Positions 4,601-62,000 of a stretch of DNA of 64,000 nucleotides are shown piece after piece. The position numbers were made by a program, and so were the translations under genes. The stretch comes from Paraphysomonas bandaiensis (taxonomy: Eukaryota > Protista > Chrysophyceae). The notes beneath the pieces were generated by a model. That model was given only the letters and a program-made list of their open reading frames with translations. It did not search any database and was not told the origin of the DNA. The DNA lies in the NCBI GenBank assembly GCA_965644295.1, contig CBFFRP010000217.1, forward strand, positions 1 through 64,000. Reading direction: 5' to 3'. Within the stretch, counting starts at the first letter, position 1. Every line of letters begins with the position of its first letter.

Positions 4601-7600
4601 GTATGCCGCGAAAGAAATACCTCCGTCATTGTTGTGGAACCACCGCATCTTGATGTCATTGGCGGAGTTGATAAGCCAGTAAGTGTATCGCCTGGTGTAC
4701 ATTCTCCGTCATCCGCGGCAGATGCACCTACATTATCAGTTCCTTCGTCTTCTTCGGGGATGCTAAATGAGCTCACAGTAGGGACCAAGGTGGAGGCTCG
4801 TTATGGCGGTTCGAACGAATGGTATGGCGCTACTATATCAGGTGTGACACACTCTGATACAGGCAAGATGTTGTACTCACTTCATTACGATGACGGTGAT
4901 GAGGAGGATGATGCGCATCGTGTGAAGATTCGACTTCCTGGACAACGTCAACGCCGTGATTTGAATGTAGGTGAGGAGGTTGATGCATCATGTGATGAAT
5001 GCGATGGTGCTATACTTCCTGGGACAATAGTAGGAAAGTCGGGAGACAAGTATACTGTTCGTTTCAACCTTCGTGAGTTGGGTGTCGGTGATTCCGACGG
5101 TGTGGAGAATGTGTTAGGGCGGAAGTTCATATTTGGTCCCCATTTCAGCAAAGATAGTAGTATGACTAGTTCAGTGAATCCGTCTGCGGGTGCGGCTGAT
5201 GCCGATAATTGCCGTGAGGATAAGGATGGCATTGGCGGAGTTGGCCATCATCCACCTTTATCTGTGGATAAACCAGTAAGTGTATCGCCTGGTGTGCATT
5301 CTCCGTCATCCGCGGCAGATGCACCTACATTATCAGTTCCTTCGTCTTCTTCGGGGATGCTAAATGAGCTCACAGTAGGGACCAAGGTGGAGGCTCGTTA
5401 TGGCGGTTCGAACGAATGGTATGGCGCTACTATATCAGGTGTGACACACTCTGATACAGGCAAGATGTTGTACTCACTTCATTACGATGACGGTGATGAG
5501 GAGGATGATGCGCATCGTGTGAAGATTCGACTTCCTGGACAACGTCAACGCCGTGATTTGAATGTAGGTGAGGAGGTTGATGCATCATGTGATGAATGCG
5601 ATGGTGCTATACTTCCTGGGACAATAGTAGGAAAGTCGGGAGACAAGTATACTGTTCGTTTCAACCTTCGTGAGTTGGGTGTCGGTGATTCCGACGGTGT
5701 GGAGAATGTGTTAGGGCGGAAGTTCATATTTAGTCCCCATTTCAGCAAAGATAGTAGTATGACTAGTTCAGTGAATCCGTCTGCGGGTGCGGCTGATGCC
5801 GATAATTGCCGTGAGGATAAGGATGGCATTGGCGGAGTTGGCCATCATCCACCTTTATCTGTGGATAAACCAGTAAGTGTATCGCCTGGTGTGCATTCTC
5901 CGTCATCCGCGGCAGATGCACCTACATTATCAGTTCCTTCGTCTTCTTCGGGGATGCTAAATGAGCTCACAGTAGGAACCAAGGTGGAGGCTCGTTATGG
6001 CGGTTCGAACGAATGGTATGGCGCTACTATATCAGGTGTGACACACTCTGATACAGGCAAGATGTTGTACTCACTTCATTACGATGACGGTGATGAGGAG
6101 GATGATGCGCATCGTGTGAAGATTCGACTTCCTGGACAACGTCAACGCCGTGATTTGAATGTAGGTGAGGAGGTTGATGCATCATGTGATGAATGCGATG
6201 GTGCTATACTTCCTGGGACAATAGTAGGAAAGTCGGGAGACAAGTATACTGTTCGTTTCAACCTTCGTGAGTTGGGTGTCGGTGATTCCGACGGTGTGGA
6301 GAATGTGTTAGGGCGGAAGTTCATATTTGGTCCCCATTTCAGCAAAGATAGTAGTATGACTAGTTCAGTGAATCCGTCTGCGGGTGCAGCTGATGCCGAT
6401 AATTGCCGTGAGGATAAGGATGGCATTGGCGGAGTTGGCCATCATCCACCTTTATCTGTGGATAAACCAGTAAGTGTATCACCTGGTGTGCATTCTCCGT
6501 CATCCGCGGCAGATGCACCTACATTATCAGTTCCTTCGTCTTCTTCGGGGATGCTAAATGAGCTCACAGTAGGGACCAAGGTGGAGGCTCGTTATGGCGG
6601 TTCGAACGAATGGTATGGCGCTACTATATCAGGTGTGACACACTCTGATACAGGCAAGATGTTGTACTCACTTCATTACGATGACGGTGATGAGGAGGAT
6701 GATGCGCATCGTGTGAAGATTCGACTTCCTGGACAACGTCAACGCCGTGATTTGAATGTAGGTGAGGAGGTTGATGCATCATGTGATGAATGCGATGGTG
6801 CTATACTTCCTGGGACAATAGTAGGAAAGTCGGGAGACAAGTATACTGTTCGTTTCAACCTTCGTGAGTTGGGTGTCGGTGATTCCGACGGTGTGGAGAA
6901 TGTGTTAGGGCGGAAGTTCATATTTGGTCCCCATTTCAGCAAAGATAGTAGTATGACTAGTTCAGTGAATCCGTCTGCGGGTGCAGCTGATGCCGATAAT
7001 TGCCGTGAGGATAAGGATGGCATTGGCGGAGTTGGCCATCATCCACCTTTATCTGTGGATAAACCAGTAAGTGTATCACCTGGTGTGCATTCTCCGTCAT
7101 CCGCGGCAGATGCACCTACATTATCAGTTCCTTCGTCTTCTTCGGGGATGCTAAATGAGCTCACAGTAGGGACCAAGGTGGAGGCTCGTTATGGCGGTTC
7201 GAACGAATGGTATGGCGCTACTATATCAGGTGTGACACACTCTGATACAGGCAAGATGTTGTACTCACTTCATTACGATGACGGTGATGAGGAGGATGAT
7301 GCGCATCGTGTGAAGATTCGACTTCCTGGACAACGTCAACGCCGTGATTTGAATGTAGGTGAGGAGGTTGATGCATCATGTGATGAATGCGATGGTGCTA
7401 TACTTCCTGGGACAATAGTAGGAAAGTCGGGAGACAAGTATACTGTTCGTTTCAACCTTCGTGAGTTGGGTGTCGGTTGTGATGAATGCGATGGTGCTAT
7501 ACTTCCTGGGACAATGACGGTGTGGAGAATGTGTTAGGGCGGAAGTTCATATTTGGTCCCCATTTCAGCAAAGATAGTAGTATGACTAGTTCAGTGAATC

Positions 7601-10600
7601 CGTCTGCGGGTGCAGCTGATGCCGATAATTGCCGTGAGGATAAGGATGGCATTGGCGGAGTTGGCCATCATCCACCTTTATCTGTGGATAAACCAGTAAG
7701 TGTATCGCCTGGTGTGCATTCTCCGTCATCCGCGGCAGATGCACCTACATTATCAGTTCCTTCGTCTTCTTCGGGGATGCTAAATGAGCTCACAGTAGGG
7801 ACCAAGGTGGAGGCTCGTTATGGCGGTTCGAACGAATGGTATGGCGCTACTATATCAGGTGTGACACACTCTGATACAGGCAAGATGTTGTACTCACTTC
7901 ATTACGATGACGGTGATGAGGAGGATGATGCGCATCGTGTGAAGATTCGACTTCCTGGACAACGTCAACGCCGTGATTTGAATGTAGGTGAGGAGGTTGA
8001 TGCATCATGTGATGAATGCGATGGTGCTATACTTCCTGGGACAATAGTAGGAAAGTCGGGAGACAAGTATACTGTTCGTTTCAACCTTCGTGAGTTGGGT
8101 GTCGGTGATTCCGACGGTGTGGAGAATGTGTTAGGGCGGAAGTTCATATTTGGTCCCCATTTCAGCAAAGATAGTAGTATGACTAGTTCAGTGAATCCGT
8201 CTGCGGGTGCAGCTGATGCCGATAATTGCCGTGAGGATAAGGATGGCATTGGCGGAGTTGGCCATCATCCACCTTTATCTGTGGATAAACCAGTAAGTGT
8301 ATCGCCTGGTGTGCATTCTCCGTCATCCGCGGCAGATGCACCTACATTATCAGTTCCTTCGTCTTCTTCGGGGATGCTAAATGAGCTCACAGTAGGGACC
8401 AAGGTGGAGGCTCGTTATGGCGGTTCGAACGAATGGTATGGCGCTACTATATCAGGTGTGACACACTCTGATACAGGCAAGATGTTGTACTCACTTCATT
8501 ACGATGACGGTGATGAGGAGGATGATGCGCATCGTGTGAAGATTCGACTTCCTGGACAACGTCAACGCCGTGATTTGAATGTAGGTGAGGAGGTTGATGC
8601 ATCATGTGATGAATGCGATGGTGCTATACTTCCTGGGACAATAGTAGGAAAGTCGGGAGACAAGTATACTGTTCGTTTCAACCTTCGTGAGTTGGGTGTC
8701 GGTGATTCCGACGGTGTGGAGAATGTGTTAGGGCGGAAGTTCATATTTGGTCCCCATTTCAGCAAAGATAGTAGTATGACTAGTTCAGTGAATCCGTCTG
8801 CGGGTGCAGCTGATGCCGATAATTGCCGTGAGGATAAGGATGGCATTGGCGGAGTTGGCCATCATCCACCTTTATCTGTGGATAAACCAGTAAGTGTATC
8901 GCCTGGTGTGCATTCTCCGTCATCCGCGGCAGATGCACCTACATTATCAGTTCCTTCGTCTTCTTCGGGGATGCTAAATGAGCTCACAGTAGGGACCAAG
9001 GTGGAGGCTCGTTATGGCGGTTCGAACGAATGGTATGGCGCTACTATATCAGGTGTGACACACTCTGATACAGGCAAGATGTTGTACTCACTTCATTACG
9101 ATGACGGTGATGAGGAGGATGATGCGCATCGTGTGAAGATTCGACTTCCTGGACAACGTCAACGCCGTGATTTGAATGTAGGTGAGGAGGTTGATGCATC
9201 ATGTGATGAATGCGATGGTGCTATACTTCCTGGGACAATAGTAGGAAAGTCGGGAGACAAGTATACTGTTCGTTTCAACCTTCGTGAGTTGGGTGTCGGT
9301 GATTCCGACGGTGTGGAGAATGTGTTAGGGCGGAAGTTCATATTTGGTCCCCATTTCAGCAAAGATAGTAGTATGACTAGTTCAGTGAATCCGTCTGCGG
9401 GTGCAGCTGATGCCGATAATTGCCGTGAGGATAAGGATGGCATTGGCGGAGTTGGCCATCATCCACCTTTATCTGTGGATAAACCAGTAAGTGTATCGCC
9501 TGGTGTGCATTCTCCGTCATCCGCGGCAGATGCACCTACATTATCAGTTCCTTCGTCTTCTTCGGGGATGCTAAATGAGCTCACAGTAGGGACCAAGGTG
9601 GAGGCTCGTTATGGCGGTTCGAACGAATGGTATGGCGCTACTATATCAGGTGTGACACACTCTGATACAGGCAAGATGTTGTACTCACTTCATTACGATG
9701 ACGGTGATGAGGAGGATGATGCGCATCGTGTGAAGATTCGACTTCCTGGACAACGTCAACGCCGTGATTTGAATGTAGGTGAGGAGGTTGATGCATCATG
9801 TGATGAATGCGATGGTGCTATACTTCCTGGGACAATAGTAGGAAAGTCGGGAGACAAGTATACTGTTCGTTTCAACCTTCGTGAGTTGGGTGTCGGTGAT
9901 TCCGACGGTGTGGAGAATGTGTTAGGGCGGAAGTTCATATTTGGTCCCCATTTCAGCAAAGATAGTAGTATGACTAGTTCAGTGAATCCGTCTGCGGGTG
10001 CAGCTGATGCCGATAATTGCCGTGAGGATAAGGATGGCATTGGCGGAGTTGGCCATCATCCACCTTTATCTGTGGATAAACCAGTAAGTGTATCGCCTGG
10101 TGTGCATTCTCCGTCATCCGCGGCAGATGCACCTACATTATCAGTTCCTTCGTCTTCTTCGGGGATGCTAAATGAGCTCACAGTAGGGACCAAGGTGGAG
10201 GCTCGTTATGGCGGCTCGAACGAATGGTATGGCGCTACTATATCAGGTGTGACACACTCTGATACAGGCAAGATGTTGTACTCACTTCATTACGATGACG
10301 GTGATGAGGAGGATGATGCGCATCGTGTGAAGATTCGACTTCCTGGACAACGTCAACGCCGTGATTTGAATGTAGGTGAGGAGGTTGATGCATCATGTGA
10401 TGAATGCGATGGTGCTATACTTCCTGGGACAATAGTAGGAAAGTCGGGAGACAAGTATACTGTTCGTTTCAACCTTCGTGAGTTGGGTGTCGGTGATTCC
10501 GACGGTGTGGAGAATGTGTTAGGGCGGAAGTTCATATTTGGTCCCCATTTCAGCAAAGATAGTAGTATGACTAGTTCAGTGAATCCGTCTGCGGGTGCAG

Positions 10601-13600
10601 CTGATGCCGATAATTGCCGTGAGGATAAGGATGGCATTGGCGGAGTTGGCCATCATCCACCTTTATCTGTGGATAAACCAGTAAGTGTATCGCCTGGTGT
10701 GCATTCTCCGTCATCCGCGGCAGATGCACCTACATTATCAGTTCCTTCGTCTTCTTCGGGGATGCTAAATGAGCTCACAGTAGGGACCAAGGTGGAGGCT
10801 CGTTATGGCGGTTCGAACGAATGGTATGGCGCTACTATATCAGGTGTGACACACTCTGATACAGGCAAGATGTTGTACTCACTTCATTACGATGACGGTG
10901 ATGAGGAGGATGATGCGCATCGTGTGAAGATTCGACTTCCTGGACAACGTCAACGCCGTGATTTGAATGTAGGTGAGGAGGTTGATGCATCATGTGATGA
11001 ATGCGATGGTGCTATACTTCCTGGGACAATAGTAGGAAAGTCGGGAGACAAGTATACTGTTCGTTTCAACCTTCGTGAGTTGGGTGTCGGTGATTCCGAC
11101 GGTGTGGAGAATGTGTTAGGGCGGAATTTCATATTTGGTCCCCATTTCAGCAAAGATAGTAGTATGACTAGTTCAGTGAATCCGTCTGCGGGTGCAGCTG
11201 ATGCCGATAATTGCCGTGAGGATAAGGATGGCATTGGCGGAGTTGGCCATCATCCACCTTTATCTGTGGATAAACCAGTAAGTGTATCGCCTGGTGTGCA
11301 TTCTCCGTCATCCGCGGCAGATGCACCTACATTATCAGTTCCTTCGTCTTCTTCGGGGATGCTAAATGAGCTCACAGTAGGGACCAAGGTGGAGGCTCGT
11401 TATGGCGGTTCGAACGAATGGTATGGCGCTACTATATCAGGTGTGACACACTCTGATACAGGCAAGATGTTGTACTCACTTCATTACGATGACGGTGATG
11501 AGGAGGATGATGCGCATCGTGTGAAGATTCGACTTCCTGGACAACGTCAACGCCGTGATTTGAATGTAGGTGAGGAGGTTGATGCATCATGTGATGAATG
11601 CGATGGTGCTATACTTCCTGGGACAATAGTAGGAAAGTCGGGAGACAAGTATACTGTTCGTTTCAACCTTCGTGAGTTGGGTGTCGGTGATTCCGACGGT
11701 GTGGAGAATGTGTTAGGGCGGAAGTTCATATTTGGTCCCCATTTCAGCAAAGATAGTAGTATGACTAGTTCAGTGAATCCGTCTGCGGGTGCAGCTGATG
11801 CCGATAATTGCCGTGAGGATAAGGATGGCATTGGCGGAGTTGGCCATCATCCACCTTTATCTGTGGATAAACCAGTAAGTGTATCACCTGGTGTGCATTC
11901 TCCGTCATCCGCGGCAGATGCACCTACATTATCAGTTCCTTCGTCTTCTTCGGGGATGCTAAATGAGCTCACAGTAGGGACCAAGGTGGAGGCTCGTTAT
12001 GGCGGTTCGAACGAATGGTATGGCGCTACTATATCAGGTGTGACACACTCTGATACAGGCAAGATGTTGTACTCACTTCATTACGATGACGGTGATGAGG
12101 AGGATGATGCGCATCGTGTGAAGATTCGACTTCCTGGACAACGTCAACGCCGTGATTTGAATGTAGGTGAGGAGGTTGATGCATCATGTGATGAATGCGA
12201 TGGTGCTATACTTCCTGGGACAATAGTAGGAAAGTCGGGAGACAAGTATACTGTTCGTTTCAACCTTCGTGAGTTGGGTGTCGGTGATTCCGACGGTGTG
12301 GAGAATGTGTTAGGGCGGAAGTTCATATTTGGTCCCCATTTCAGCAAAGATAGTAGTATGACTAGTTCAGTGAATCCGTCTGCGGGTGCAGCTGATGCCG
12401 ATAATTGCCGTGAGGATAAGGATGGCATTGGCGGAGTTGGCCATCATCCACCTTTATCTGTGGATAAACCAGTAAGTGTATCGCCTGGTGTGCATTCTCC
12501 GTCATCCGCGGCAGATGCACCTACATTATCAGTTCCTTCGTCTTCTTCGGGGATGCTAAATGAGCTCACAGTAGGGACCAAGGTGGAGGCTCGTTATGGC
12601 GGTTCGAACGAATGGTATGGCGCTACTATATCAGGTGTGACACACTCTGATACAGGCAAGATGTTGTACTCACTTCATTACGATGACGGTGATGAGGAGG
12701 ATGATGCGCATCGTGTGAAGATTCGACTTCCTGGACAACGTCAACGCCGTGATTTGAATGTAGGTGAGGAGGTTGATGCATCATGTGATGAATGCGATGG
12801 TGCTATACTTCCTGGGACAATAGTAGGAAAGTCGGGAGACAAGTATACTGTTCGTTTCAACCTTCGTGAGTTGGGTGTCGGTGATTCCGACGGTGTGGAG
12901 AATGTGTTAGGGCGGAAGTTCATATTTGGTCCCCATTTCAGCAAAGATAGTAGTATGACTAGTTCAGTGAATCCGTCTGCGGGTGCAGCTGATGCCGATA
13001 ATTGCCGTGAGGATAAGGATGGCATTGGCGGAGTTGGCCATCATCCACCTTTATCTGTGGATAAACCAGTAAGTGTATCGCCTGGTGTGCATTCTCCGTC
13101 ATCCGCGGCAGATGCACCTACATTATCAGTTCCTTCGTCTTCTTCGGGGATGCTAAATGAGCTCACAGTAGGGACCAAGGTGGAGGCTCGTTATGGCGGT
13201 TCGAACGAATGGTATGGCGCTACTATATCAGGTGTGACACACTCTGATACAGGCAAGATGTTGTACTCACTTCATTACGATGACGGTGATGAGGAGGATG
13301 ATGCGCATCGTGTGAAGATTCGACTTCCTGGACAACGTCAACGCCGTGATTTGAATGTAGGTGAGGAGGTTGATGCATCATGTGATGAATGCGATGGTGC
13401 TATACTTCCTGGGACAATAGTAGGAAAGTCGGGAGACAAGTATACTGTTCGTTTCAACCTTCGTGAGTTGGGTGTCGGTGATTCCGACGGTGTGGAGAAT
13501 GTGTTAGGGCGGAAGTTCATATTTGGTCCCCATTTCAGCAAAGATAGTAGTATGACTAGTTCAGTGAATCCGTCTGCGGGTGCAGCTGATGCCGATAATT

Positions 13601-14733
13601 GCCGTGAGGATAAGGATGGCATTGGCGGAGTTGGCCATCATCCACCTTTATCTGTGGATAAACCAGTAAGTGTATCACCTGGTGTGCATTCTCCGTCATC
13701 CGCGGCAGATGCACCTACATTATCAGTTCCTTCGTCTTCTTCGGGGATGCTAAATGAGCTCACAGTAGGGACCAAGGTGGAGGCTCGTTATGGCGGTTCG
13801 AACGAATGGTATGGCGCTACTATATCAGGTGTGACACACTCTGATACAGGCAAGATGTTGTACTCACTTCATTACGATGACGGTGATGAGGAGGATGATG
13901 CGCATCGTGTGAAGATTCGACTTCCTGGACAACGTCAACGCCGTGATTTGAATGTAGGTGAGGAGGTTGATGCATCATGTGATGAATGCGATGGTGCTAT
14001 ACTTCCTGGGACAATAGTAGGAAAGTCGGGAGACAAGTATACTGTTCGTTTCAACCTTCGTGAGTTGGGTGTCGGTGATTCCGACGGTGTGGAGAATGTG
14101 TTAGGGCGGAAGTTCATATTTGGTCCCCATTTCAGCAAAGATAGTAGTATGACTAGTTCAGTGAATCCGTCTGCGGGTGCAGCTGATGCCGATAATTGCC
14201 GTGAGGATAAGGATGGCATTGGCGGAGTTGGCCATCATCCACCTTTATCTGTGGATAAACCAGTAAGTGTATCACCTGGTGTGCATTCTCCGTCATCCGC
14301 GGCAGATGCACCTACATTATCAGTTCCTTCGTCTTCTTCGGGGATGCTAAATGAGCTCACAGTAGGGACCAAGGTGGAGGCTCGTTATGGCGGTTCGAAC
14401 GAATGGTATGGCGCTACTATATCAGGTGTGACACACTCTGATACAGGCAAGATGTTGTACTCACTTCATTACGATGACGGTGATGAGGAGGATGATGCGC
14501 ATCGTGTGAAGATTCGACTTCCTGGACAACATCAACGCCGTGATTTGAATGTAGGTGAGGAGGTTGATGCACCATGTGATGAATGCGATGGTGCTATACT
14601 TCCTGGGACAATAGTAGGAAAGTCGGGAGACAAGTATACTGTTCGTTTCAACCTTCGTGAGTTGGGTGTCGGTGATTGTGATATGGTTGAGTGTATGCTG
14701 CGTCGTGAATTGATTTTTGGTTTACATTGTTGA
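1605..14733 (+). CDS. Multi-exon protein: N-terminal C2-like domains, helical region, then 17 tandem Tudor/Agenet-pair repeats (frameshift in repeat 5)
   Basis: ATG 1605. Introns 1668-1717 and 2003-2048 join ORFs 1605, 1709 and 1953 in frame. C2-like LWDQRLELQVP...LRVSLL. Further short exons at ~3.6-4.3 kb (boundaries approximate; linkage to the array inferred). Repeat unit has Tudor signature GTKVEARYGGSNEWYGATI...YSLHYDDGDEE. Confidence 0.7.
4670..14677 (+). repeat. Coding tandem array, 597-bp (199-aa) unit, ~16.7 copies (17 Tudor pairs)
   Basis: Shadow ORFs recur at exactly 597-bp spacing except one 629-bp interval; only a handful of SNPs between copies. Confidence 0.97.
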
Positions 14734-15040
14734 TGTGATTGTTTATCAGCAGTGAGGGTGATATTTTTGTCTGTTCTTTATATGTTTTTGTTGGATAACT
14801 ATTTGTTTTCATGGTATTGATTATTTTTGGATATCATTTTATTTTTTTACGGTAGTGTTCCTGTTCTTTGTGTCCTACCCGAACAATTAGATCATTGTTT
14901 GCGTTAGCGTAGATTCGATTAGGATTAGGGTTAGTTCCCTCATCATCATCAGGGTGCTAAACCTCTGGCGGAGGAGTATATTGAATGGTGCCTGCAGTAG
15001 ACCATTATAACTCTGAGAGCATATATCCCTGCTCCTAATA

Positions 15041-15245
15041 TAGAGTGAAAGCCCTATTATTAGCAGTAGGCGTCAAGTAGTTAGAATAAAGTTTCGAAAC
15101 CAGATAAGTAGTTAGATGAAGACTAGTCACTCTAGATCGACCTCTACCAGTAACTAACTAGTGTAAATTCTCATATCCTACTATTTAACGCTACAGAAGC
15201 AGCTTGTGCGTCACCGCAGCACCAAGGTGCAACCACTTCCGTTCT
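15041..15245 (-). ncRNA. Unknown structured-RNA/SINE-like element, copy 1
   Basis: Shares TAG-AGTGAA, TAGCARTAGGCGT and TATCCTACTATTTAACGCTAC...GCTTGTGCGTC...GCACCAAGGTGCAACCACTTCCGTTCT blocks with copies 2 and 3. Flanked by CTGCTCCYAATATA direct repeats. Strand is tentative (GNRA loop and most G-U pairs favour minus). Confidence 0.55.
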
Positions 15246-16625
15246 GCTCCCAATATATGCCTTTATGTTCATGAATGAGTTTCGAAAAGCACAGAAGTAA
15301 GAGAATTTCATTCCGGAATAACACTGACATGATAATCACATGATGAATAACAAGACATAATATAACAACGTAATGCATGAACCATAAACGAATTATTAAT
15401 GAGTAAAACGCAGTTGAAAAATATCATATGCAATGCGTCATACGATATAATAACCTATACAAGAGTCAATTGCGATTACGCTGTCGACGACGCTAGCTCT
15501 AATCACGATTATTTAATGTATTTTTGCTAAACGCAATTTTTGTAAACTAGAAACAGCCACCGCCATATATTTCAAGATGACATTGCTAAGAATCAACCTA
15601 GAGCATCTAGTTAGTTTAAATCTTATCATATCATAGCATTCATAGAACAGTTGCCTATTCCGATTTCCCCATGTACATACCTGCTACTACTGCAGCCATG
15701 ATAGTATCAGAAAAAAACTCAATTATGCTCTCAATTGCAGTATGTTGGCCTGTATTATATCGATTGTTAAAGTCCTACTACCGAACATAAACTACCAATT
15801 GAACCTGCACAAACAGCTGTTTTTTATATTAAAGTTTATACCATTACACAGTGCACTCTATCCACACCGCAAATAGAGAGTGAGCCTGAAACACACAATA
15901 TAAGGCTTTTAAAATAAAAGATTGTCTGTTTATTGGGGATACAGAGACTGTTCAAACCCAGAGTTCCTGGAGCTTAATGAAGCTAAAAGTTTGATAATTT
16001 TAGTTGTTGGGCGAAACATTTCAAACGTGTGGGCTGTACACGGTGCCCTTAATTCAATAAATACTACCAAGCGATAATAATACGCTGTTGGGTTTTAGTA
16101 GAGTTTACAATATACTTATAACTAGGATGATAGGGAAGACTTCACAACCCGTTCAATCCTTAGAATTAAATTCTGCCCGAGATTGTGTCATTTGTTGATA
16201 AGTCGTTGAGGTGTATTGGTGTATTTTACTTTAGCTTGAAGGGAACATACGCAGCTGCAGAAATGTATTAGAGTATAATGACTCTTCATATCAGTCATCT
16301 TATTGTAGTAGTGTGGTGGCATTATCCCCTAGAATACATGACTTACGACTGTTATAAGAATAACATCTACCAACGTATCTGTTGATACAACATTTGTATG
16401 TAGAGCCACCTCCAAGTATAAAAATCTAGGCCTGAACTTCTCCCCTGAGAATGAATTGGAATTGCAGCGCTATGGCCGTTTCATATTCTACATAGTTTCT
16501 ACACAATCTATGGCCTTTGAGTGCTCTTCTTCTCGACTTTCTTTAGACTAATATATGTGTCATTATATGCTTTACAAGAAGGATAGTTTCATGTGATTGG
16601 GAGGATATGAACAACTGCCCTCGTT

Positions 16626-16814
16626 TAGTAGTGAATGTTTATTTAGCAATAGGCGTTGAGACCTTGCATCAATTAGTGGCTAGAAGAATGCTAGTCATAC
16701 TAGTTAGACCACTACCCGTAACTAATCAATACAAACTCTTTTATCCTACTATTTAACGCTACGAAAGCTGCTTGTGCGTCGCCGCAAGCACCAAGGTGCA
16801 ACCACTTCCGTTCT
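16626..16814 (-). ncRNA. Unknown structured-RNA/SINE-like element, copy 2
   Basis: Same conserved blocks; flanked by CTKCCCTCGTTT direct repeats (16615-16626, 16813-16824). Confidence 0.55.
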
Positions 16815-17144
16815 TCCCTCGTTTCTGTGCATTAGTGGTTGGTATTATATTGGTGTTTGAGGTATAGCTTCTCTTGTATTGACTTAATATAAACCACAAA
16901 CAATTGTAGCGAAATAGAGTTGCACTATGTGGTTTCAAAAAGCTATAGCGTCAGTCAGCGGACATGCAACGCTGTTCAGCGTCACCAACGGGTAAATTTG
17001 CTGTCAGAATTAAACGCAGACGGCAATAGTCCTTATTAGCCTTGAAAAACAAAAAGATAAGACAACACAACATTTATAACTCTACACTTCGCACACATAC
17101 AAAACTCTAATGTGCACGAACTAAAACTAATACCCTACACAAAA

Positions 17145-17330
17145 GTCAACTGTCTACAATATGTCACATATTCATAACAAACAACAAGCGTCAACTGTCT
17201 ACAATATGTCACATATTCATAACAAACAACAAGCGTCAACTATCTACAATAATATGTCACATATTCATAACAAACAACAAGCGTCAACTATTTACAATAT
17301 GTCACATATTCATAACAAACAACAAGCGTC
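17145..17330. repeat. Minisatellite, 45-bp unit x4
   Basis: GTCAACTGTCTACAATATGTCACATATTCATAACAAACAACAAGC at 17145, 17190, 17235 (48 bp) and 17283. Confidence 0.95.
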
Positions 17331-17839
17331 TAGTCAAGATTTCTGCCTTCGACATAAAGAAATCCCGTCGCTACAAGAAGTAGACCTATCTAAAGAGACA
17401 AATTCAGAGTACCACAACGATGTTCACATCCAGCTCCCAGTTACACTCCCCAATTTTCTATTCAACTGAGTGTGTTAATATCAATCTGGCAATTTGTGTA
17501 ATTGTGGCGTCCGAGGATGCGGTCAGCTCTAAAAAGTCATCTCTGACTACCGCAACATAAGTCTCTTTATCCTCATATATCCAGTGCTTCATGTCCAGCT
17601 TGACATATGACTGAAGGCTTGTCTGCAGCTCCGAAAACACACTTCTTCAGGTTTACTGTGAGAACAAACATTTCAAACCTTGTCAATAATGTACACATAG
17701 TGCTGTGATGTTACAAGTAGATAATATATACGAATTTTTATTAGGTAATCTACTGGTGAAAGCAAAACAAGCCAGCGGGTGGGAAAGAAAGTGAATCAAC
17801 CTCCACTCTGTGCTATGTAAGGTTCCGTTGTGGGCATTC

Positions 17840-18006
17840 TAGTAGTAAATGTCTTAATAATAGCAATAGCCGTTGAAGAGTTAGAGAACTAATGTAACAA
17901 AATATATTAACTGACAAGTGCTTAACTCTGATATCCTACTCTATTTAACGCTACGAAATCTGCTTGTGCGTCACTGCAAGCATCAAGATGCAAACACTTT
18001 TGTTCT
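17840..18006 (-). ncRNA. Unknown structured-RNA/SINE-like element, copy 3 (most diverged)
   Basis: Same blocks with compensatory hairpin GCAT-CAAG-ATGC versus GCAC-CAAG-GTGC; no clear flanking direct repeat. Confidence 0.5.
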
Positions 18007-19180
18007 ATCACTCAAAGAAAACGCAGTGAGAAGTAGAATGTTGATATACGTGGCATCTATTGACTTCAGGATTTTTGAGTTCTGAAGGTGAACAGCCCGG
18101 ATGCTTGACTTCAGCAGGCAGCCTAAAACCCCGTTTACCATTAAGGTGTGCCATTTCCGGATTCATGCTTATTCATCAGGGCTCAAAGTCGTCTACACAA
18201 AAGACACTTATATCAGTGTCCCTTGTACTACACAAGTATTTGTCTATGAGTGACAGAAGGTTATTTGCTGTCTATGTTTGCGGCTCACGTTAGTTTTAAG
18301 GAGAAATATCTCCCGTACTTTTCCCCCAGGACACCACGAAAAGGTGCCAGTTCAACTTTGTTGAGGGTGATGACCATTCTAATTAAGTGTTTCAGAATGA
18401 TTAGTATCAGTTATAAACTGTAGAAATTTAGGTATGTCTTATGCTTAGTTGCATAAAGTTCATTGGCAACGAATATTTCTTGTTTTAGACGGCGTTACCT
18501 GCTATGTAATGAAATAATTCAAGGCACTATCGATTGTCAAATGAATATATGACTCAGCTACATTGAATACGTTCATATCTTTGCCCACATCAAAAAAAAA
18601 TATTTCTCAATAAATTCTAAGTCATCTACTGAGTCGATAACTTAATGTAGACTAATTAAACCGAAAGCCCTTTGTACTACATGCTGCATTTCGCAAAGAA
18701 AAGTAAAAAATATTAAACAACTCATATAGGACGATGAACATATCATATGAAAATAAATGAACGTAAATCTAAGGAGCCGCACTATATCCACAAATCCATA
18801 AGTATTAATTCTAAGCATAGTCACATACATAAAGGCCACTGAAAAAGAATTCACATGAACAACAAACCTCAGACACCACTGTGTTATTCCATGTCAAGTA
18901 GAAATCTGAAACATCGTCAGTGAGGCAGTAAAACAATTCGTTCCATACATATAATTTTCAACAAAATCAGAATACACAAACTTATACTACATTTCACTAC
19001 AATACTTGGTCATCTTAGACCAGGTAGTAGTTCAATAAATGCAACGGCAGCGGGAAGCTCTCCTGCATCGTCAGAACATATTCAAATACGTTACCTTAAA
19101 ATTTCATAGGCAAGTATTATTTCCCTTCTCGAACTGGTTTGTGGTGGCTCGCTGGGATATCAAATGTTGCGATGAAAATT

Positions 19181-52310: not shown

Positions 52311-52494
52311 TAACGCGTCCCTCTTTTATGTGAGCTGACCATGTTGCTGATGCAGCAGCACACATAAAATTAAAATTCGAATCATAGCATATACCGGTAT
52401 ACAGTGTATACCCCGTATACATACATCCATACACTTCTATACTCTGTGTTGCTGTTTATATAGCCACATGATGAGGGTAAAAAAACAGAAAATA

Positions 52495-52566
52495 TGAAAG
52501 CGACGAGAATCGAACTCGCAACCTTTGGGACTGGAATCCAACGCGCTACCATTGCGCCACGCCTTC
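52495..52566 (-). tRNA. trnW: tRNA-Trp (CCA), copy 1
   Basis: GAAGGCG TG GCGC AATGGTA GCGC G TTGGA TTCCAGT CCCAA AGGTT GCGAG TTCGATT CTCGT CGCTTTC A; upstream TATA-like sequence and downstream T-runs. Confidence 0.93.
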
Positions 52567-52647
52567 AGTACAGATGACAATTACGTAATCATTTGAATAT
52601 ATAAATTCTCAAAATATGTAAGAAGGGTATCAAAAAACGACAAAATA

Positions 52648-52719
52648 TGAAAGCGACGAGAATCGAACTCGCAACCTTTGGGACTGGAATCCAACGCGCT
52701 ACCATTGCGCCACGCCTTC
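52648..52719 (-). tRNA. trnW: tRNA-Trp (CCA), copy 2 (identical)
   Basis: Identical 72-nt cloverleaf with diverged flanks, its own TATA-like sequence and T-run terminator. Confidence 0.93.
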
Positions 52720-53068
52720 ACCACTCATGTCGTCGAATAAAAATTTAGTATATATAAAGTGTATTCCTGTTACAATACCGTTACTTTCTGTTCCTCACCA
52801 CTACGTATGGACTACATACAGAGTGTACGACAAGTGTGTGTGGCAGTTCGAAAGGTCGTGGCAGATAGAGTAACCCTGACCCTTATCAAGGAAACAGATA
52901 CCTCTGAAGGAAACAAGCACTTCAGCGAAAACGAATTTTATACGTGATCAGGCCACAACAGCTTATTATTTTTCAAATGAATGCATGTATTTCGCGGTGT
53001 GTAATGTGACGTTGTTGGAATTTCTATCAACCCACAAGATATTGTTGTCTGTTCTTTTGAGGCATTAG

Positions 53069-56000: not shown

Positions 56001-59000
56001 GTAGTCAGCCTAGTGGCCAACCAACAGGTGAACCATCATCTGTTCCATCTTGTGTTCCTACAAGTGAGCCAACCGGTCAACCAACATCTCAACCAACTGG
56101 ATCACCGACAGGTCAACCTACAGGTGAGCCGTCTTCATGTCCTAGTGGAGTGCCTAGTTCTCAACCAACTTGTATTCCGTCTGGAGAACCAACCTCAATA
56201 CCTAGTGGTCAACCAAGTGGTTATCCAACAAGTCAGCCTTCTGGTGAACCAACATCTTTACCAAGTGGTGCACCAAGTAGCCAACCGTCAGGACAACCTA
56301 CTGGTGAACCATCCTCGATTCCGACATGTGTACCTAGTGGTCAGCCGAGTGGTCAACCCACTGCTATGCCTAGTAGTCAGCCTAGTGGACAGCCCTCAGG
56401 TCAACCTACTTCAACTCCAAGTGGAATTCCAAGTGGCCAACCGTCCGGCCAACCGACGTGCCAACCGACATCACAACCAAGCAGTGCACCAAGTGTGGTT
56501 CCCAGTGGACAACCTACGGGTGAACCGTCATCTGTTCCATCTTGTGTTCCTACAAGTGAGCCAACCGGTCAACCAACATCTCAACCAACTGGATCACCGA
56601 CAGGTCAACCCACAGGTGAGCCGTCTTCATGTCCTAGTGGAGTGCCTAGCTCTCAACCAACTTGTATTCCGTCTGGAGAACCAACCTCAATACCTAGTGG
56701 TCAACCAAGTGGTTATCCAACAAGTCAGCCTTCTGGTGAACCAACATCTTTACCAAGTGGTGCACCAAGTAGCCAACCGTCAGGACAGCCTACTGGTGAA
56801 CCATCCTCGATTCCGACATGTGTACCTAGTGGTCAGCCGAGTGGTCAACCCACTGCTATGCCTAGTAGTCAGCCTAGTGGACAGCCAACAGGTGAACCAT
56901 CATCTGTTCCATCTTGTGTTCCTACAAGTGAGCCAACCGGTCAACCAACATCTCAACCAACTGGATCACCGACCGGTCAACCCACAGGTGAGCCGTCTTC
57001 ATGTCCTAGTGGAGTGCCTAGCTCTCAACCAACTTGTATTCCGTCTGGAGAACCAACCTCAATACCTAGTGGTCAACCAAGTGGTTATCCAACAAGTCAG
57101 CCTTCTGGTGAACCAACATCTTTACCAAGTGGTGCACCAAGTAGCCAACCGTCAGGACAACCTACTGGTGAACCATCCTCGATTCCGACATGTGTACCTA
57201 GTGGCATGCCAAGTGGTCAACCCACTGCTATGCCTAGTGGTCAGCCTAGTGGACAGCCCTCAGTTCAACCTACTTCAACTCCAAGTGGAATTCCAAGTGG
57301 CCAACCGTCCGGCCAGCCGACGTGCCAACCGACTTCACAGCCAAGCAGTGCACCAAGTGTGATTCCCAGTGGACAACCTACGGGTGAACCGTCATCTGTT
57401 CCATCTTGTGTTCCTACAAGTGAGCCAACCGGTCAACCAACATCTCAACCAACTGGATCACCGACCGGTCAACCTACAGGTGACCCGTCTTCATGTCCTA
57501 GTGGAGTGCCTAGTTCTCAACCAACTTGTATTCCGTCTGGGGAACCGACCTCAATACCTAGTGGTCAACCAAGTGGTTATCCAACAAGTCAGCCTTCTGG
57601 TGAACCAACATCTTTACCAAGTGGTGCACCAAGTAGCCAACCGTCAGGACAACCTACTGGTGAACCATCCTCGATTCCGACATGTGTACCTAGTGGTCAG
57701 CCGAGTGGTCAACCCACTGCTATGCCTAGTAGTCAGCCTAGTGGCCAGCCAACAGGTGAACCATCATCTGTTCCATCTTGTGTTCCTACAAGTGAGCCAA
57801 CTGGTCAACCCACATCTCAACCAACTGGATCACCGACCGGTCAACCTACAGGTGAGCCGTCTTCATGTCCTAGTGGAGTGCCTAGTTCTCAACCAACTTG
57901 TATTCCGTCTGGGGAACCGACCTCAATACCTAGTGGTCAACCAAGTGGTTATCCAACAAGTCAGCCTTCTGGTGAACCAACATCTTTACCAAGTGGTGCA
58001 CCAAGTAGCCAACCGTCAGGACAACCTACTGGTGAACCATCCTCGATTCCGACATGTGTACCTAGTGGTCAGCCGAGTGGTCAACCCACTGCTATGCCTA
58101 GTAGTCAGCCTAGTGGCCAACCAACAGGTGAACCGTCATCTGTTCCATCTTGTGTTCCTACAAGTGAGCCAACCGGGCAACCAACATCTCAACCAACTGG
58201 ATCACCGACAGGTCAACCTACAGGTGAGCCGTCTTCATGTCCTAGTGGAGTGCCTAGTTCTCAACCAACTTGTATTCCGTCTGGAGAACCAACCTCAATA
58301 CCTAGTGGTCAACCAAGTGGTTATCCAACAAGTCAGCCTTCTGGTGAACCAACATCTTTACCAAGTGGTGCACCAAGTAGCCAACCGTCAGGACAACCTA
58401 CTGGTGAACCATCCTCGATTCCGACATGTGTACCTAGTGGTCAGCCTAGTGGTCAACCTACTGCTATGCCTAGTGGTCAGCCTAGTGGACAGCCAACAGG
58501 TGAACCATCATCTGTTCCATCTTGTGTTCCTACAAGTGAGCCAACCGGTCAACCAACATCTCAACCAACTGGATCACCGACAGGTCAACCTACAGGTGAG
58601 CCGTCTTCATGTCCTAGTGGAGTGCCTAGTTCTCAACCAACGTGTATTCCGTCTGGAGAGCCAACCTCAATACCTAGTGGTCAACCAAGTGGTTATCCAA
58701 CAAGTCAGCCTTCTGGTGAACCAACATCTTTACCAAGTGGTGCACCAAGTGGCCAACCGTCAGGACAACCTACTGGTGAACCATCCTCGATTCCGACATG
58801 TGTACCTAGTGGTCAGCCTAGTGGTCAACCCACTGCTATGCCTAGTAGTCAGCCTAGTGGCCAACCAACAGGTGAACCATCATCTGTTCCATCTTGTGTT
58901 CCTACAAGTGAGCCAACCGGTCAACCAACATCTCAACCAACTGGATCACCGACAGGTCAACCTACAGGTGAGCCGTCTTCATGTCCTAGTGGAGTGCCTA

Positions 59001-62000
59001 GTTCTCAACCAACTTGTATTCCGTCTGGGGAACCGACCTCAATACCTAGTGGTCAACCAAGTGGTTATCCAACAAGTCAGCCTTCTGGTGAACCGTCATC
59101 TGTTCCATCTTGTGTTCCTACAAGTGAGCCATCCGGTCAACCAACATCTCAACCAACTGGATCACCGACCGGTCAACCCACAGGTGAGCCGTCTTCATGT
59201 CCTAGTGGAGTGCCTAGCTCTCAACCAACTTGTATTCCGTCTGGAGAACCAACCTCAATACCTAGTGGTCAACCAAGTGGTTATCCAACAAGTCAGCCTT
59301 CTGGTGAACCAACATCTTTACCAAGTGGTCAACCGTCAGGACAACCTACTGGTGAACCATCCTCGATTCCGACATGTGTACCTAGTGGTCAGCCGAGTGG
59401 TCAACCCACTGCTATGCCTAGTAGTCAGCCGAGTGGTTACCCAACAAGTCAGCCTTCAGGTGAACCATCATCCTTTCCGAGTGGCCAACCATCCGGGCAA
59501 CCAACTGGTCAACCATCATCTTCTCCAAGCAGTATACCTAGTAGCATGCCAAGTGGTCAACCCACTGCCTTTCCGAGTGGTCAACCAAGTGGTTATCCAA
59601 CAAGTCAGCCTTCTGGTGAACCAACATCTTTACCAAGTGGTGCACCAAGTAGCCAACCGTCAGGACAGCCTACTGGTGAACCATCATCGATTCCGACATG
59701 TGTACCTAGTGGTCAGCCTAGTGGTCCACCTACTGCTATGCCTAGTTGTTACCCAACAAGTCAGCCCTCAGTTCAACCTACTTCAACTCCAAGTGGAATT
59801 CCAAGTGGCCAACCGTCCGGCCAGCCGACGTGCCAACCGACATCACAACCAAGCAGTGCACCAAGTGTGATTCCCAGTGGACAACCTACGGGTGAACCGT
59901 CATCTGTTCCATCTTGTGTTCCTACAAGTGAGCCAACTGGTCAACCCACATCTCAACCAACTGGATTACCGACCGGTCAACCTACAGGTGAGCCCTCATC
60001 TGTACCTTCCAGTTTTCCTTCTAACCAACCGACCAAAGTCCCAGTTACTTCCTGTCCAACTTCCCCTGGAGATACCAACATGCCAACAAGTTCTCATCCT
60101 ACTTCATCTCCAACGAGACTCCCTTACTTGATATCCTCAATTGACGTAAACTCGACTGAGTCCAGTATCAACGTGGCAGCATACTTACTGGAAAACTCCT
60201 ATCTTTATTGTGGTTTATTTCCTGAGAAAATGCCACCTACTTCGACGAATAATGTGCTGTACCAAAATTATTTTAATATTTCGTATGAACAGTTTGTGAC
60301 ACTGACTATTTCTGGATTAGAGGCACAAACATTATACTACGTATATTGCATAACACAGAGTTTCGATGGAATCGTGACTACTACTTATGCGCGAATGATA
60401 GAGAATAAAGTACCCATCAGAACACCATGTTGTAATCGCTTGTATGTGGACCTTAAGCAAACAACTGTGTTTTTCGAGACGTCCACTACAGATGCCCTGT
60501 TTATAACGTGGTCGTCATTGCCTGATAGAGATTTGAATGTGCACTTTGCTACGAATTACAATGGTGCTGTTGCAGTTGTTAATCCTTTTCTACCGATGTC
60601 TTTGACTTTAACAAGTGGTACGAAAGGTACACGGAAGAGTTTTTCACTTCCTAGTTTGCTTGACCCAGGAACGTATACATTAAATTTCACGTTGGGTGGT
60701 GCAAATGCTGCTGATTTTCGAGTAGTTTACAGCAGTGAAACTCCAGTTTCTTTTACCGTGGTTAGCACTGAAAGTGGCTACGTTCCACCTGCACCTAGAA
60801 TTCATTCTTGCCGATTTTCGAACGACGGAACTCATGTGGAAGTCACATTTGATTCAAAAACTAATGAGGCTTTACTGACTGTGTCTTTTACGTGTTCGTC
60901 ATTATTTATATTCCCGGGTAGTGATATGTCTACGTGCAAATGGAAGAATAGTACTACTGTTTATATATACACTGCTGCAGCTTTCCATCAAAGAGTAGGA
61001 GATGTTATAATTCTTAAAGGAGGAATTGTCGGAGCTCGTTGTCCAAGCAGCACTGATATATGTGCGTCATGGTCTCATACACCGGCGGCTAATATTACAA
61101 TCGATGAGGCTCGTAGCCCCGTGACTCCTGTTGTGGAAATATCAGCTCCTTCATATATCAGCCCTTGTGATACATTTGTGTTAGACTTGACTGCCTCAAC
61201 AGGGTCCAGCGGGAGGTCATGGGACACGGTTGATATACATATAACTAGTTCTACACTCACAACACGATTAAATACGTTTTTTCGCGATATATATGAAGTA
61301 TTTCCACCCACTCCTGTTCCTGAAGGACTCTTCAGAGCACCCGCAGCATATAGTATTTCGATTACTTTGTGTAATTTTCTTGGTAGGTGCAGTACAACTG
61401 CCACTCATGTTCTCACAGTCAGAACTCTTACGGCCAGCACCGTGACACCGTCGTTGTCTATTGTGGGCCCGCGAAATCGAAGAATCAAACGAATGCATGA
61501 GCTTGTAGTTGAAGCTTCGGCGTATGTCAATTTATGTTTAGGGTCGATATCTACAGCAAACTTAGCGTACAATTGGCGACTTAGTCAAGATGGAATTGAT
61601 CTTGATGATGTTGTATCCACGTCTCAGAGGCCTACAGTATTCAGGATACAGCCTAATAATTTGGATGTATTAAGTGTCTATGTTGTTCATGTATCAGTGA
61701 CGTACTCTCAATCTGGACTTTCGGCGGAGAGCTCTGTTAATGTGTATGTTGACCAATCTTCTATTGTTGCAGTACTGGTTGGAGGTTCGATACGAAAAGT
61801 TCCACATGGCAAATTAATTGTTGTGGACGCGTCGCAGAGTTATGACGAAGATATCAGCTCTTTAAAAGGAGCACAAGCAGGGTTGAAATTTTTGTGGGAG
61901 TGTTCTTTGACGGCACCTCTATTGCCGTCGTTTTGTGGCTTAACTGTCGCCAGCAGCTTGACTGCTGAAACTCTCTTGTTACGTGCTCAAGAATCAAAGT

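Follow-up and report, generated by a model that had tools for sequence, protein, structure and literature searches.

What kind of element are three similar, apparently structured, non-coding copies that lie close together in the genome of Paraphysomonas bandaiensis? The copies, here named c1 (15041-15245), c2 (16626-16814) and c3 (17840-18006), are located in a stretch of 64,000 nt (contig CBFFRP010000217.1, positions 1 to 64,000), which we refer to as the window. An original prediction, made from the letters alone, regarded them as a family of folded RNAs, possibly a ribozyme, a guide-RNA scaffold or a structured short interspersed nuclear element (SINE). Our analysis leads to a simpler answer. 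The copies are best explained as fossil insertions of a single retrotransposon 3' tail module on the minus strand, and we put the probability of this explanation as a whole at about 0.82. The module, 193 nt in length, is the 3' tail of a young long interspersed nuclear element (LINE) with an apurinic endonuclease (APE) type domain, which we call LINE-A, and it is also the tail of a sister element, LINE-B, and of a SINE-like element.

The region 14500-18600 was read directly, and repeat finding, alignment, BLAST and a profile hidden Markov model (HMM) built from 63 genomic tail copies were applied to the 64-kb window. BLAST and the profile HMM find exactly three tail copies in the window, all on the minus strand, with HMM coordinates of 15040-15245 (E = 8e-55), 16626-16814 (E = 2e-52) and 17840-18006 (E = 5e-39). 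This agrees with the earlier report of three co-oriented copies and no others. Two further points of that report are seen as described: in the alignment a block of ~70 nt and another of ~35 nt are conserved around a middle that varies in length, and the interval is free of genes, with no open reading frame (ORF) of at least 250 aa between 14733 and 19181.

Genome-wide copies identify a LINE 3' terminus

The 62.5-Mb, 669-contig assembly containing the window was searched with each of the three copies, and the copy numbers given here are first-look candidates per query. The c2 query gave 2,509 candidates, and the 40 copies that were scored are 97-98% identical. About 2,100 candidates (2,108) were obtained with c1, mostly full-length matches at 80-88% identity, and about 1,900 (1,885) with c3, again mostly full-length, at 80-84% identity. 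Alignment of 63 distinct copies together with their flanks was used to assign the c1, c2 and c3 subfamilies. Pattern counts over the whole genome gave 233 copies of the LINE-A-specific middle and 89 copies of the commonest junction between the LINE-A untranslated region (UTR) and the tail.

The flanks of the 29 best c2-type copies reveal two sharp ends. In 23 of these 29 copies, common sequence extends beyond the end which reads …CCGTTCT on the plus strand, and this extension is the 3' UTR and the ORF of a long opposite-strand element. The bodies of these LINEs have a common 3' end but scattered 5' truncations (2.4, 3.1, 4.05, 4.9, 6.3 and 9.36 kb). Since c2-type copies extend in this way into an opposite-strand ORF with APE and reverse transcriptase (RT) domains, the tail can be assigned as the 3' terminus of a LINE. 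Its functional orientation is the minus strand of the window, AGAACGGAAGUGG … CAUUCACUACUA. The tails are without poly(A), and the target-site duplications around the copies are variable in length, ranging from 8 to 13 bp. The original prediction had set an ordinary transposable-element terminus against its own reading, and a terminus of this kind is what the module proved to be. For annotation, the consequence is that such copies should be masked as LINE or SINE tails on the minus strand.

LINE-A and its sister LINE-B

LINE-A is about 9.36 kb at full length and contains a single ORF, which encodes 3016 aa in an intact copy. Matches to RVT_1 (1e-14), Exo_endo_phos (2e-9) and SET (1e-8) were found in this ORF, along with an RNase H-like region, a CCHC motif and an OTU-like DGYC motif. 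The SET domain and the OTU-like motif are located upstream of the APE domain, which is followed by RT, the RNase H-like region and the CCHC motif. An ORF with SET and an OTU-like motif ahead of APE, RT and RNase H makes LINE-A unusual; a literature search found no SET-bearing LINEs, a negative which is not proof of novelty. Between the stop codon and the tail there are 43 nt, and the tail has the same sense as the ORF.

A full-length copy of LINE-A (L058:435-9793, minus strand; G000:C440) is bounded on both sides by a perfect 11-bp duplication, GTAATTCATAA. More than 40 copies of the LINE-A 5' end are 99-100% identical, and LINE-linked tails number ~89-120 genome-wide. LINE-A is probably active at present, because dozens of its copies are 99-100% identical and its target-site duplications are perfect. 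On long elements the tail module is present as one copy each, at the 3' end only, and the 5' end of LINE-A is unrelated to it.

Genomic copies of the c1 type are mostly preceded by a different body, which is 64-67% identical to the 3' ORF region of LINE-A at the nucleotide level. This is the body of LINE-B, an older sister of LINE-A, to which the c1-type tail belongs. When the RT-RNase H-CCHC portion of the LINE-A ORF was used as a protein query, 41 proteins were identified, nearly all of them unnamed metagenome predictions, at 28-41% identity, and some of these relatives also carry APE and SET. The clade was found only among such unnamed metagenome proteins, and no paper describing it was found in our literature search.

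Fold of the tail RNA

The tail is ~165-205 nt in length across the subfamilies. The predicted folding energy of the minus-strand tail RNA is -54.5 kcal/mol (z = -1.76), as compared to -41.3 kcal/mol (z = -0.56) for the plus strand. Three parts can be distinguished in the predicted fold. The first ~54 nt form a three-way junction, which is the minimum free energy (MFE) structure of this segment in the c1 consensus, the c2 consensus and the c3 variants carrying G6. In c2 it consists of an outer helix, ACGGAAGU.GUU / AGC.GCUUUCGU, hairpin 1 (GCAC-CUUG-GUGC), hairpin 2 (UGCG-GCGA-CGCA) and a junction strand, CAAG. Folding of the isolated segment and the cross-lineage architecture described below place this module at tail nt 4-54 of c2 (16761-16811, minus strand), with counterparts at ~15192-15242 in c1 and ~17953-18003 in c3. 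The second part is a rod-like hairpin of variable sequence, which is closed by a conserved long-range helix, UAGUAGG/CCUAUUG. The third part is an unpaired terminal motif of ~25 nt, AAAUAAUCAGACAUUCACUACUA; in c2 it occupies 16626-16651 on the minus strand (consensus GCUAAAUAAUCAGACAUUCACUACUA) and is predicted to be single-stranded, as it is unpaired in the MFE fold.

In the alignment of 63 genomic copies, 90% of the cells pair, and one clear switch of pair type is present, at 7:51, with 30 copies carrying AU, 22 GC and 5 GU. Weak covariation is to be expected within the genome, since most differences between copies represent neutral decay after insertion. The AGUAGG/CCUAUU helix is well supported by itself, with 96% of its cells paired in the same alignment, and a metagenomic relative of LINE-A (L128) has a counterpart at the same position, UAGUAGUG/CACUAUUA. 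RNAalifold on MAFFT alignments of the 63 genomic copies and of 11 cross-lineage segments gave essentially nothing, because decayed copies and length-variable helices misalign in sequence-based alignments; it was replaced by folding of each sequence and partner-permutation tests.

The pairings proposed in the original prediction can be placed on this fold. The difference between UAGA/UCUA and UAGU/ACUA is one of subfamily consensus, and the arms that close the middle differ between subfamilies while remaining complementary in each; both are consistent with the rod domain. The change from GCAC/GUGC to GCAU/AUGC exists, but it is a private double transition in the decayed c3 and one-sided versions are common elsewhere, which makes it weak evidence. 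The minus-strand GNRA hairpin (GCGA/GUGA) holds within the genome, whereas the hairpin-2 loops vary across lineages. The suggested pseudoknot had to be given up: its two helices compete for C162 of the 193-nt consensus, so that one of them must stay incomplete, pairing is lost in 31% of the cells at the outer pairs of GCGUU/AACGC and systematically so in the c3 family, and cross-lineage support is absent.

The three-way junction in distant LINE lineages

The contigs encoding the relatives of LINE-A were fetched and their 3' UTRs were read. In eight metagenomic LINE lineages (L121/L123, L126, L127, L128, L129, L130, L131 and L132), the three-way junction is present at the start of the 3' UTR, at a distance of about 10 to about 90 nt from the stop codon. 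The layout is common to the lineages: an outer helix, then hairpin 1 (stem GCRC, loop CCUUGKA or YUUG), then 1-4 nt, then hairpin 2 with a short stem and a variable loop, and finally a conserved GCACAR strand leading back to the outer helix. In 8 of 11 isolated segments the junction is the MFE structure.

The 5' strands of the outer helix agree at only ~27% of positions between lineages, but every one of them is complementary to the 3' strand of its own lineage. True partners have a mean energy of -11.7 kcal/mol as compared to -4.85 kcal/mol for mismatched partners, and none of 100,000 permutations was as good. Over nine lineages, between 2 and 6 canonical pair types occur at each of the eight outer-helix positions, with 4-6 at most of them. 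Switches between AU, GC, CG and GU pairs are seen across lineages in hairpins 1 and 2 as well, and the observed cross-lineage covariation was matched by 0 of 5,000 partner shuffles. The decisive covariation support therefore comes from the distant LINE lineages and not from the genomic copies, and it identifies the predicted three-way junction as an RNA fold that is conserved with compensating changes across a deep LINE clade. The covariation on which the original prediction relied is thus weak in the 63 genomic copies and strong across LINE lineages, for a junction which it had not described.

The tails of the relatives resemble the tail of LINE-A as a whole, with a junction, a rod-like hairpin with a long-range closing helix and an unpaired terminal motif. 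The terminal motif AAAUAAWCAGA…UUC is common to the 3' ends of L128, L129, L130 and L132 and is looser in L121. In several lineages the loop of hairpin 1 could pair with the junction strand, as CUUG:CAAG in the P. bandaiensis tail, UUUG:CAAA in L121 and UGU:ACA in L129-L132, and this pairing could be a tertiary contact. Beyond the tail, an (ACAT)n microsatellite is seen in L128 (tail at 5185-5509) and (TGTA)n in L130 (tail at 4678-4953), and the L121 tail ends in A9. Given these endings, 3'-end formation differs between lineages with the same junction and terminal motif. The junction motif is without an Rfam match and represents a candidate new RNA family, which could also be an aid to studying template choice by RT.

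Tail-only copies and a fixed 5' base

Twenty young tails (L137-L156) lacking the common LINE-A UTR-tail junction were sampled. Ten of them are tail-only copies with perfect target-site duplications of 10-13 bp, and all ten have G2 of GAACGGAAG as their first base, two bases ahead of the outer helix. Five others are joined to variant LINE UTRs and the remaining five are cut at scattered internal points of the tail. The 3' ends of the tail-only copies vary by a few bases (…CACTACTA, …CACTACT, …CACTAT, …CACCAC). It is also at G2 that the tail is joined to LINE-A, LINE-B and two SINE bodies. Since tail-only copies and four upstream joints use one and the same base, a discrete tail RNA seems to exist. 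It may arise from its own start site, from processing at the junction base or from template switching. The fixed-base retrocopies suggest a defined tail RNA whose origin is directly testable.

The alternative that survives best starts from these copies, and it complements the LINE-tail explanation rather than excluding it. The ~192-nt tail would be a minimal SINE with its own transcription from an internal start at G2 into a discrete small RNA, mobilised by the LINE, and the tails of longer elements would have been captured by template switching. The ten tail-only copies with one start base and perfect duplications, next to internal truncations that are scattered (5), fit this proposal, as do the numbers of young tails (~233, against 89 with the common LINE-A junction), the joining of the tail through one junction base to four different upstream partners, and the tail-only type of c1 and c2 in the window. 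However, the promoter is putative, the A and B boxes of RNA polymerase III promoters are matched in part, with the match disrupted in the c1 subfamily, and the conservation of the junction near the stop codon in distant LINE 3' UTRs fits a LINE function better than a promoter. We regard a minimal SINE as possible, though on balance doubtful.

A less probable proposal gives the junction itself an active role. The invariant GCACAR strand and a CCUUG loop able to pair with it would define the 5' end of a ~192-nt RNA, and this RNA would be a mobile module in its own right. The end could be produced by self-cleavage, as in a new ribozyme class, by a directed cellular nuclease or by an internal start signal; even taken jointly, these routes appear unlikely to us. 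If the proposal were true, the tail-only mobile RNA would be the module from which chimeras of LINEs and SINEs assemble by template switching.

More improbable again is the narrower idea that the junction is, or directs, a site of RNA cleavage just 5' of G2, as a new ribozyme or an RNase substrate, which would free the tail. Such a site could account for a 5' end fixed two bases before the outer helix, for unpaired nucleotides (CCUUGKA in the loop of hairpin 1, GCACAR in the junction strand) that are strongly conserved between deep lineages, and for the complementarity between loop and junction strand in several lineages. However, a protein-binding site would be just as likely to have conserved loops. 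The fold is a simple three-way junction and lacks the nested double pseudoknot of the hepatitis delta virus (HDV) type, and HDV, hammerhead, twister, twister-sister, pistol, hatchet and other Rfam models gave no match at E up to 10.

The Rfam scans can be summarised as follows. A scan of the whole window at gathering thresholds identified only two tRNA-Trp genes, cmscan of 14700-18300 at E up to 10 gave only one chance match to a long non-coding RNA, and a scan of 18230-18420 at E up to 10 gave only chance matches. The scans of the tail region agree with the original statement that no match to tRNA, hammerhead, twister or HDV could be made. An HDV-like ribozyme was rejected for the tail, as the strand after hairpin 1 is not complementary to the 5' end and the fold is unknotted; hammerhead, twister, twister-sister, pistol and hatchet were rejected, as none had a covariance-model match over 14700-18300 at E up to 10. 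A ribozyme or guide-RNA scaffold, as proposed originally, is not supported, with no Rfam family matching.

Solo long terminal repeats (LTRs), miniature inverted-repeat transposable elements (MITEs) or DNA transposon ends would likewise be small non-coding sequences, scattered over the genome, sharply bounded and flanked by direct repeats, but this class has practically no probability left and is already refuted by element anatomy: the module is present at one end only of long elements and absent from their 5' end, terminal inverted repeats are lacking, the duplications vary from 8 to 13 bp, and the linked ORF is an APE and RT LINE ORF in bodies with scattered 5' truncation.

Expression and weighing of the LINE-tail explanation

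In three sequencing runs guessed to be RNA, the repeats and the 3' region of the gene upstream of c1 (14900-15128) are present, but the unique spacers are missing. These runs also contain tails that continue into LINE and SINE bodies, and a DNA run covers everything. This contig pattern is compatible with transcription of the tail.

Several points weigh against the explanation of the copies as LINE tails with a conserved fold. The z-scores of the tail are modest, and the predicted stability of the 5' domain by itself (z about -1) is nothing unusual. The genomic copies covary weakly, with 16 of 500 shuffles reaching the observed score. Among the distant lineages, L126, L130 and L131 have another MFE structure, and the junction costs 1.5-4.2 kcal/mol more. 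The helices were assigned by folding each sequence, so that full pairing is partly by construction, and the partner permutation answers this for the outer helix only; the sample is nine lineages. Simple 5' truncation does not account for the single base at which the tail-only copies begin. Finally, the expression data are contigs from runs which are only guessed to be RNA, and hence they are silent on strand and ends.

Taken together, what was observed originally is confirmed and its interpretation is partly supported. The copies do contain a folded module under structural constraint; it is not a free-standing RNA but the 3' terminus of a LINE or of a LINE-dependent element. The term structured SINE came close to the truth for c3, and c1 and c2 are tail-only retrocopies of LINE tails.

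The SINE-like element of c3

The c3 element is non-coding and ~528 nt in length, running from 18367 to 17840. The tail module (17840-18006, minus strand; E = 5e-39), which belongs to the subfamily with a short middle, is followed upstream by a body and head of ~360 nt (18007-18367, minus strand), and the head begins with CCCTCAACAAAGTTGAACTGGCACCTTTTCGTGGTG. The original prediction had ended c3 at 18006; similarity to other loci continues to 18367, where it stops sharply in comparisons with L028, L002, L019, L006, L027, L020 and L021. Each sampled copy of the c3 type has one of two variants of the SINE body upstream of its tail, and no second copy of the c3 SINE body is present in the window. 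The consensus of c3-type tails is nearly that of the LINE tails in the first ~70 nt and the last ~35 nt.

A search of 17840-18420 with ARAGORN and Rfam gave no match that would indicate a tRNA, 7SL or 5S ancestry of the head. A classical RNA polymerase III SINE head, with A and B boxes and of tRNA, 7SL or 5S origin, was rejected on these negative results for 17840-18420. The 5' end of LINE-A was rejected as the source of the head, the two sequences being without similarity.

On the minus strand of 18280-18367 the head reads CCCTCAAC…CGTGGTG…AAGTAC-hairpin-GGAAACTAAC, and it has ordered short motifs in common with the Pr77/L1TcRz hallmark of trypanosomatids. It can be threaded into the P1, P2, P3 and P4 helices, but a 4-nt spacer is needed between P3 and P1. 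With a partial Pr77 query, rebuilt from primers printed in PMC3185411 and PMC4748587, local alignment of the head to Pr77 nt 27-77 scored 18.5 against a shuffle mean of 18.1. Homology to Pr77 is not significant in this alignment, which does not rise above shuffles, and the link remains a lead. A kinetoplastid spliced-leader pattern, composed in part from a primer in PMC4748587, does not occur in the genome even when 3 mismatches are allowed.

The copies c1 and c2 and their setting in the window

Copy c1 (15041-15245, minus strand; nhmmer E = 8e-55) is a decayed tail-only retrocopy of the older sister LINE, that is of the LINE-B type, and is without a body. Its target-site duplication is GCTCC(T/C)AATA, read as GCTCCTAATA on the left (15031-15040) and as GCTCCCAATA on the right (15246-15255), with 9 of 10 positions equal. 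Copy c2 (16626-16814, minus strand) is a tail-only retrocopy of the young LINE-A tail with a 4-nt deletion near its 3' end relative to the 193-nt consensus. It is flanked by identical duplications, CCCTCGTT, at 16618-16625 and 16816-16823.

The interval from c1 to c3 is a convergent gap, with plus-strand genes on one side and minus-strand genes on the other. On the plus strand, a 2415-aa ORF at 7486-14733, made of exact 597-nt tandem units (13000-14493), ends just upstream of c1, and contigs from the runs guessed to be RNA extend from this ORF through 15128 into c1. It may be that c1 is located within the 3' UTR of this gene, with the element antisense to it. A tandem repeat of ~5 units of 45-48 nt (AATATGTCACATATTCATAACAAACAACAAGCGTCAACTGTCTAC) is present at 17113-17330, between c2 and c3.

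Elsewhere in the window, the two tRNA-Trp(CCA) genes at 52494-52567 and 52647-52720 (minus strand) are identical and arranged in tandem, 153 bp from start to start. An 833-aa ORF at 57369-59870 (plus strand) shows a weak match to the hAT C-terminal dimerisation domain (1.2e-5) and may be a domesticated or decayed hAT transposase.

Proposed mechanism and comparison with known systems

The tail likely serves for recognition by the RT, in the LINE and the SINE alike. In the mechanism that we propose, the LINE protein would bind the structured tail on its own mRNA and would then prime reverse transcription at the nicked target, leaving duplications of 8-13 bp. Any RNA with the same tail, such as a SINE or a tail-only RNA, could be mobilised in trans. 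In every lineage the junction comes early in the 3' UTR, which suggests that the nascent protein might be captured in cis.

In the 'stringent' pairs of LINEs and SINEs, the RT recognises a structured 3' tail without poly(A), and an RNA bearing this tail is retrotransposed. Examples are UnaL2 and UnaSINE1 of the eel, CR1 and the tortoise RNA polymerase III SINE, L2 and MIR, and RTE and Bov-tA. Stringent partnerships of this kind were reportedly treated by Ohshima et al. in 1996 and by Kajikawa and Okada in 2002. As in these pairs, the LINE and the short elements described here end in a common tail without poly(A), in which structure is followed by a terminal motif; a microsatellite follows the tail in some relatives (L128, L130), and the target-site duplications are of variable length. 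Unlike the single terminal stem-loop of the stringent pairs, a three-way junction near the stop codon and a rod domain are found here. The SINE head is not related to tRNA, 7SL or 5S, tail-only copies with a fixed end occur, and the LINE carries SET and an OTU-like motif, all of which are further differences.

The 3' UTR RNA of R2 is bound by the R2 protein for target-primed reverse transcription. The tail resembles those of R2 and of SART1/TRAS in having a multi-helix 3' UTR fold that is kept in structure and not in sequence, is independent of poly(A) and is presumed to be the site of RT binding. In contrast to R2, which has a restriction-like endonuclease and inserts site-specifically, the endonuclease here is of the APE type and the insertions are dispersed. 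The tail matched no Rfam family, including any R2 element model if Rfam has one.

R2 SIDEs and other ribozyme-headed non-autonomous retroelements consist of a 5' module joined to a LINE 3' UTR. The short element described here is similarly composed, from a putative 5' processing or promoter module and a LINE 3' UTR. It differs from them in that a ribozyme in its head is hypothetical and its tail is without a known ribozyme fold. R2 SIDEs and ribozyme-headed elements are cited in PMC4035085.

The trypanosomatid retroposons L1Tc/NARTc, ingi/RIME and SIDER carry the Pr77 hallmark (PMC3185411, PMC4035085, PMC4748587). LINE-A and its short elements are comparable to L1Tc and ingi in the presence of APE, RT, RNase H and a C-terminal zinc-binding motif, in having short non-coding partners and in the size of the duplications. 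With Pr77 the SINE head has in common, in order, CCCT at +1, CGTGGTG, AGTAC, a hairpin and GGAA.CTAA, in an alignment that is not above shuffles. Unlike the elements described here, in which the 3' tail is common, L1Tc and ingi end in poly(A) and it is the 5' end that is common with the LINE.

The RNA motif, the LINE clade with SET and an OTU-like motif, and the tail-only copies with a fixed end had no match in Rfam or in the literature search. The functional kind to which the copies belong is known, namely a LINE 3' tail that is common with dependent short elements. As this kind is well known, the answer to the question raised by c1, c2 and c3 is far less exotic than a new ribozyme or a guide RNA.

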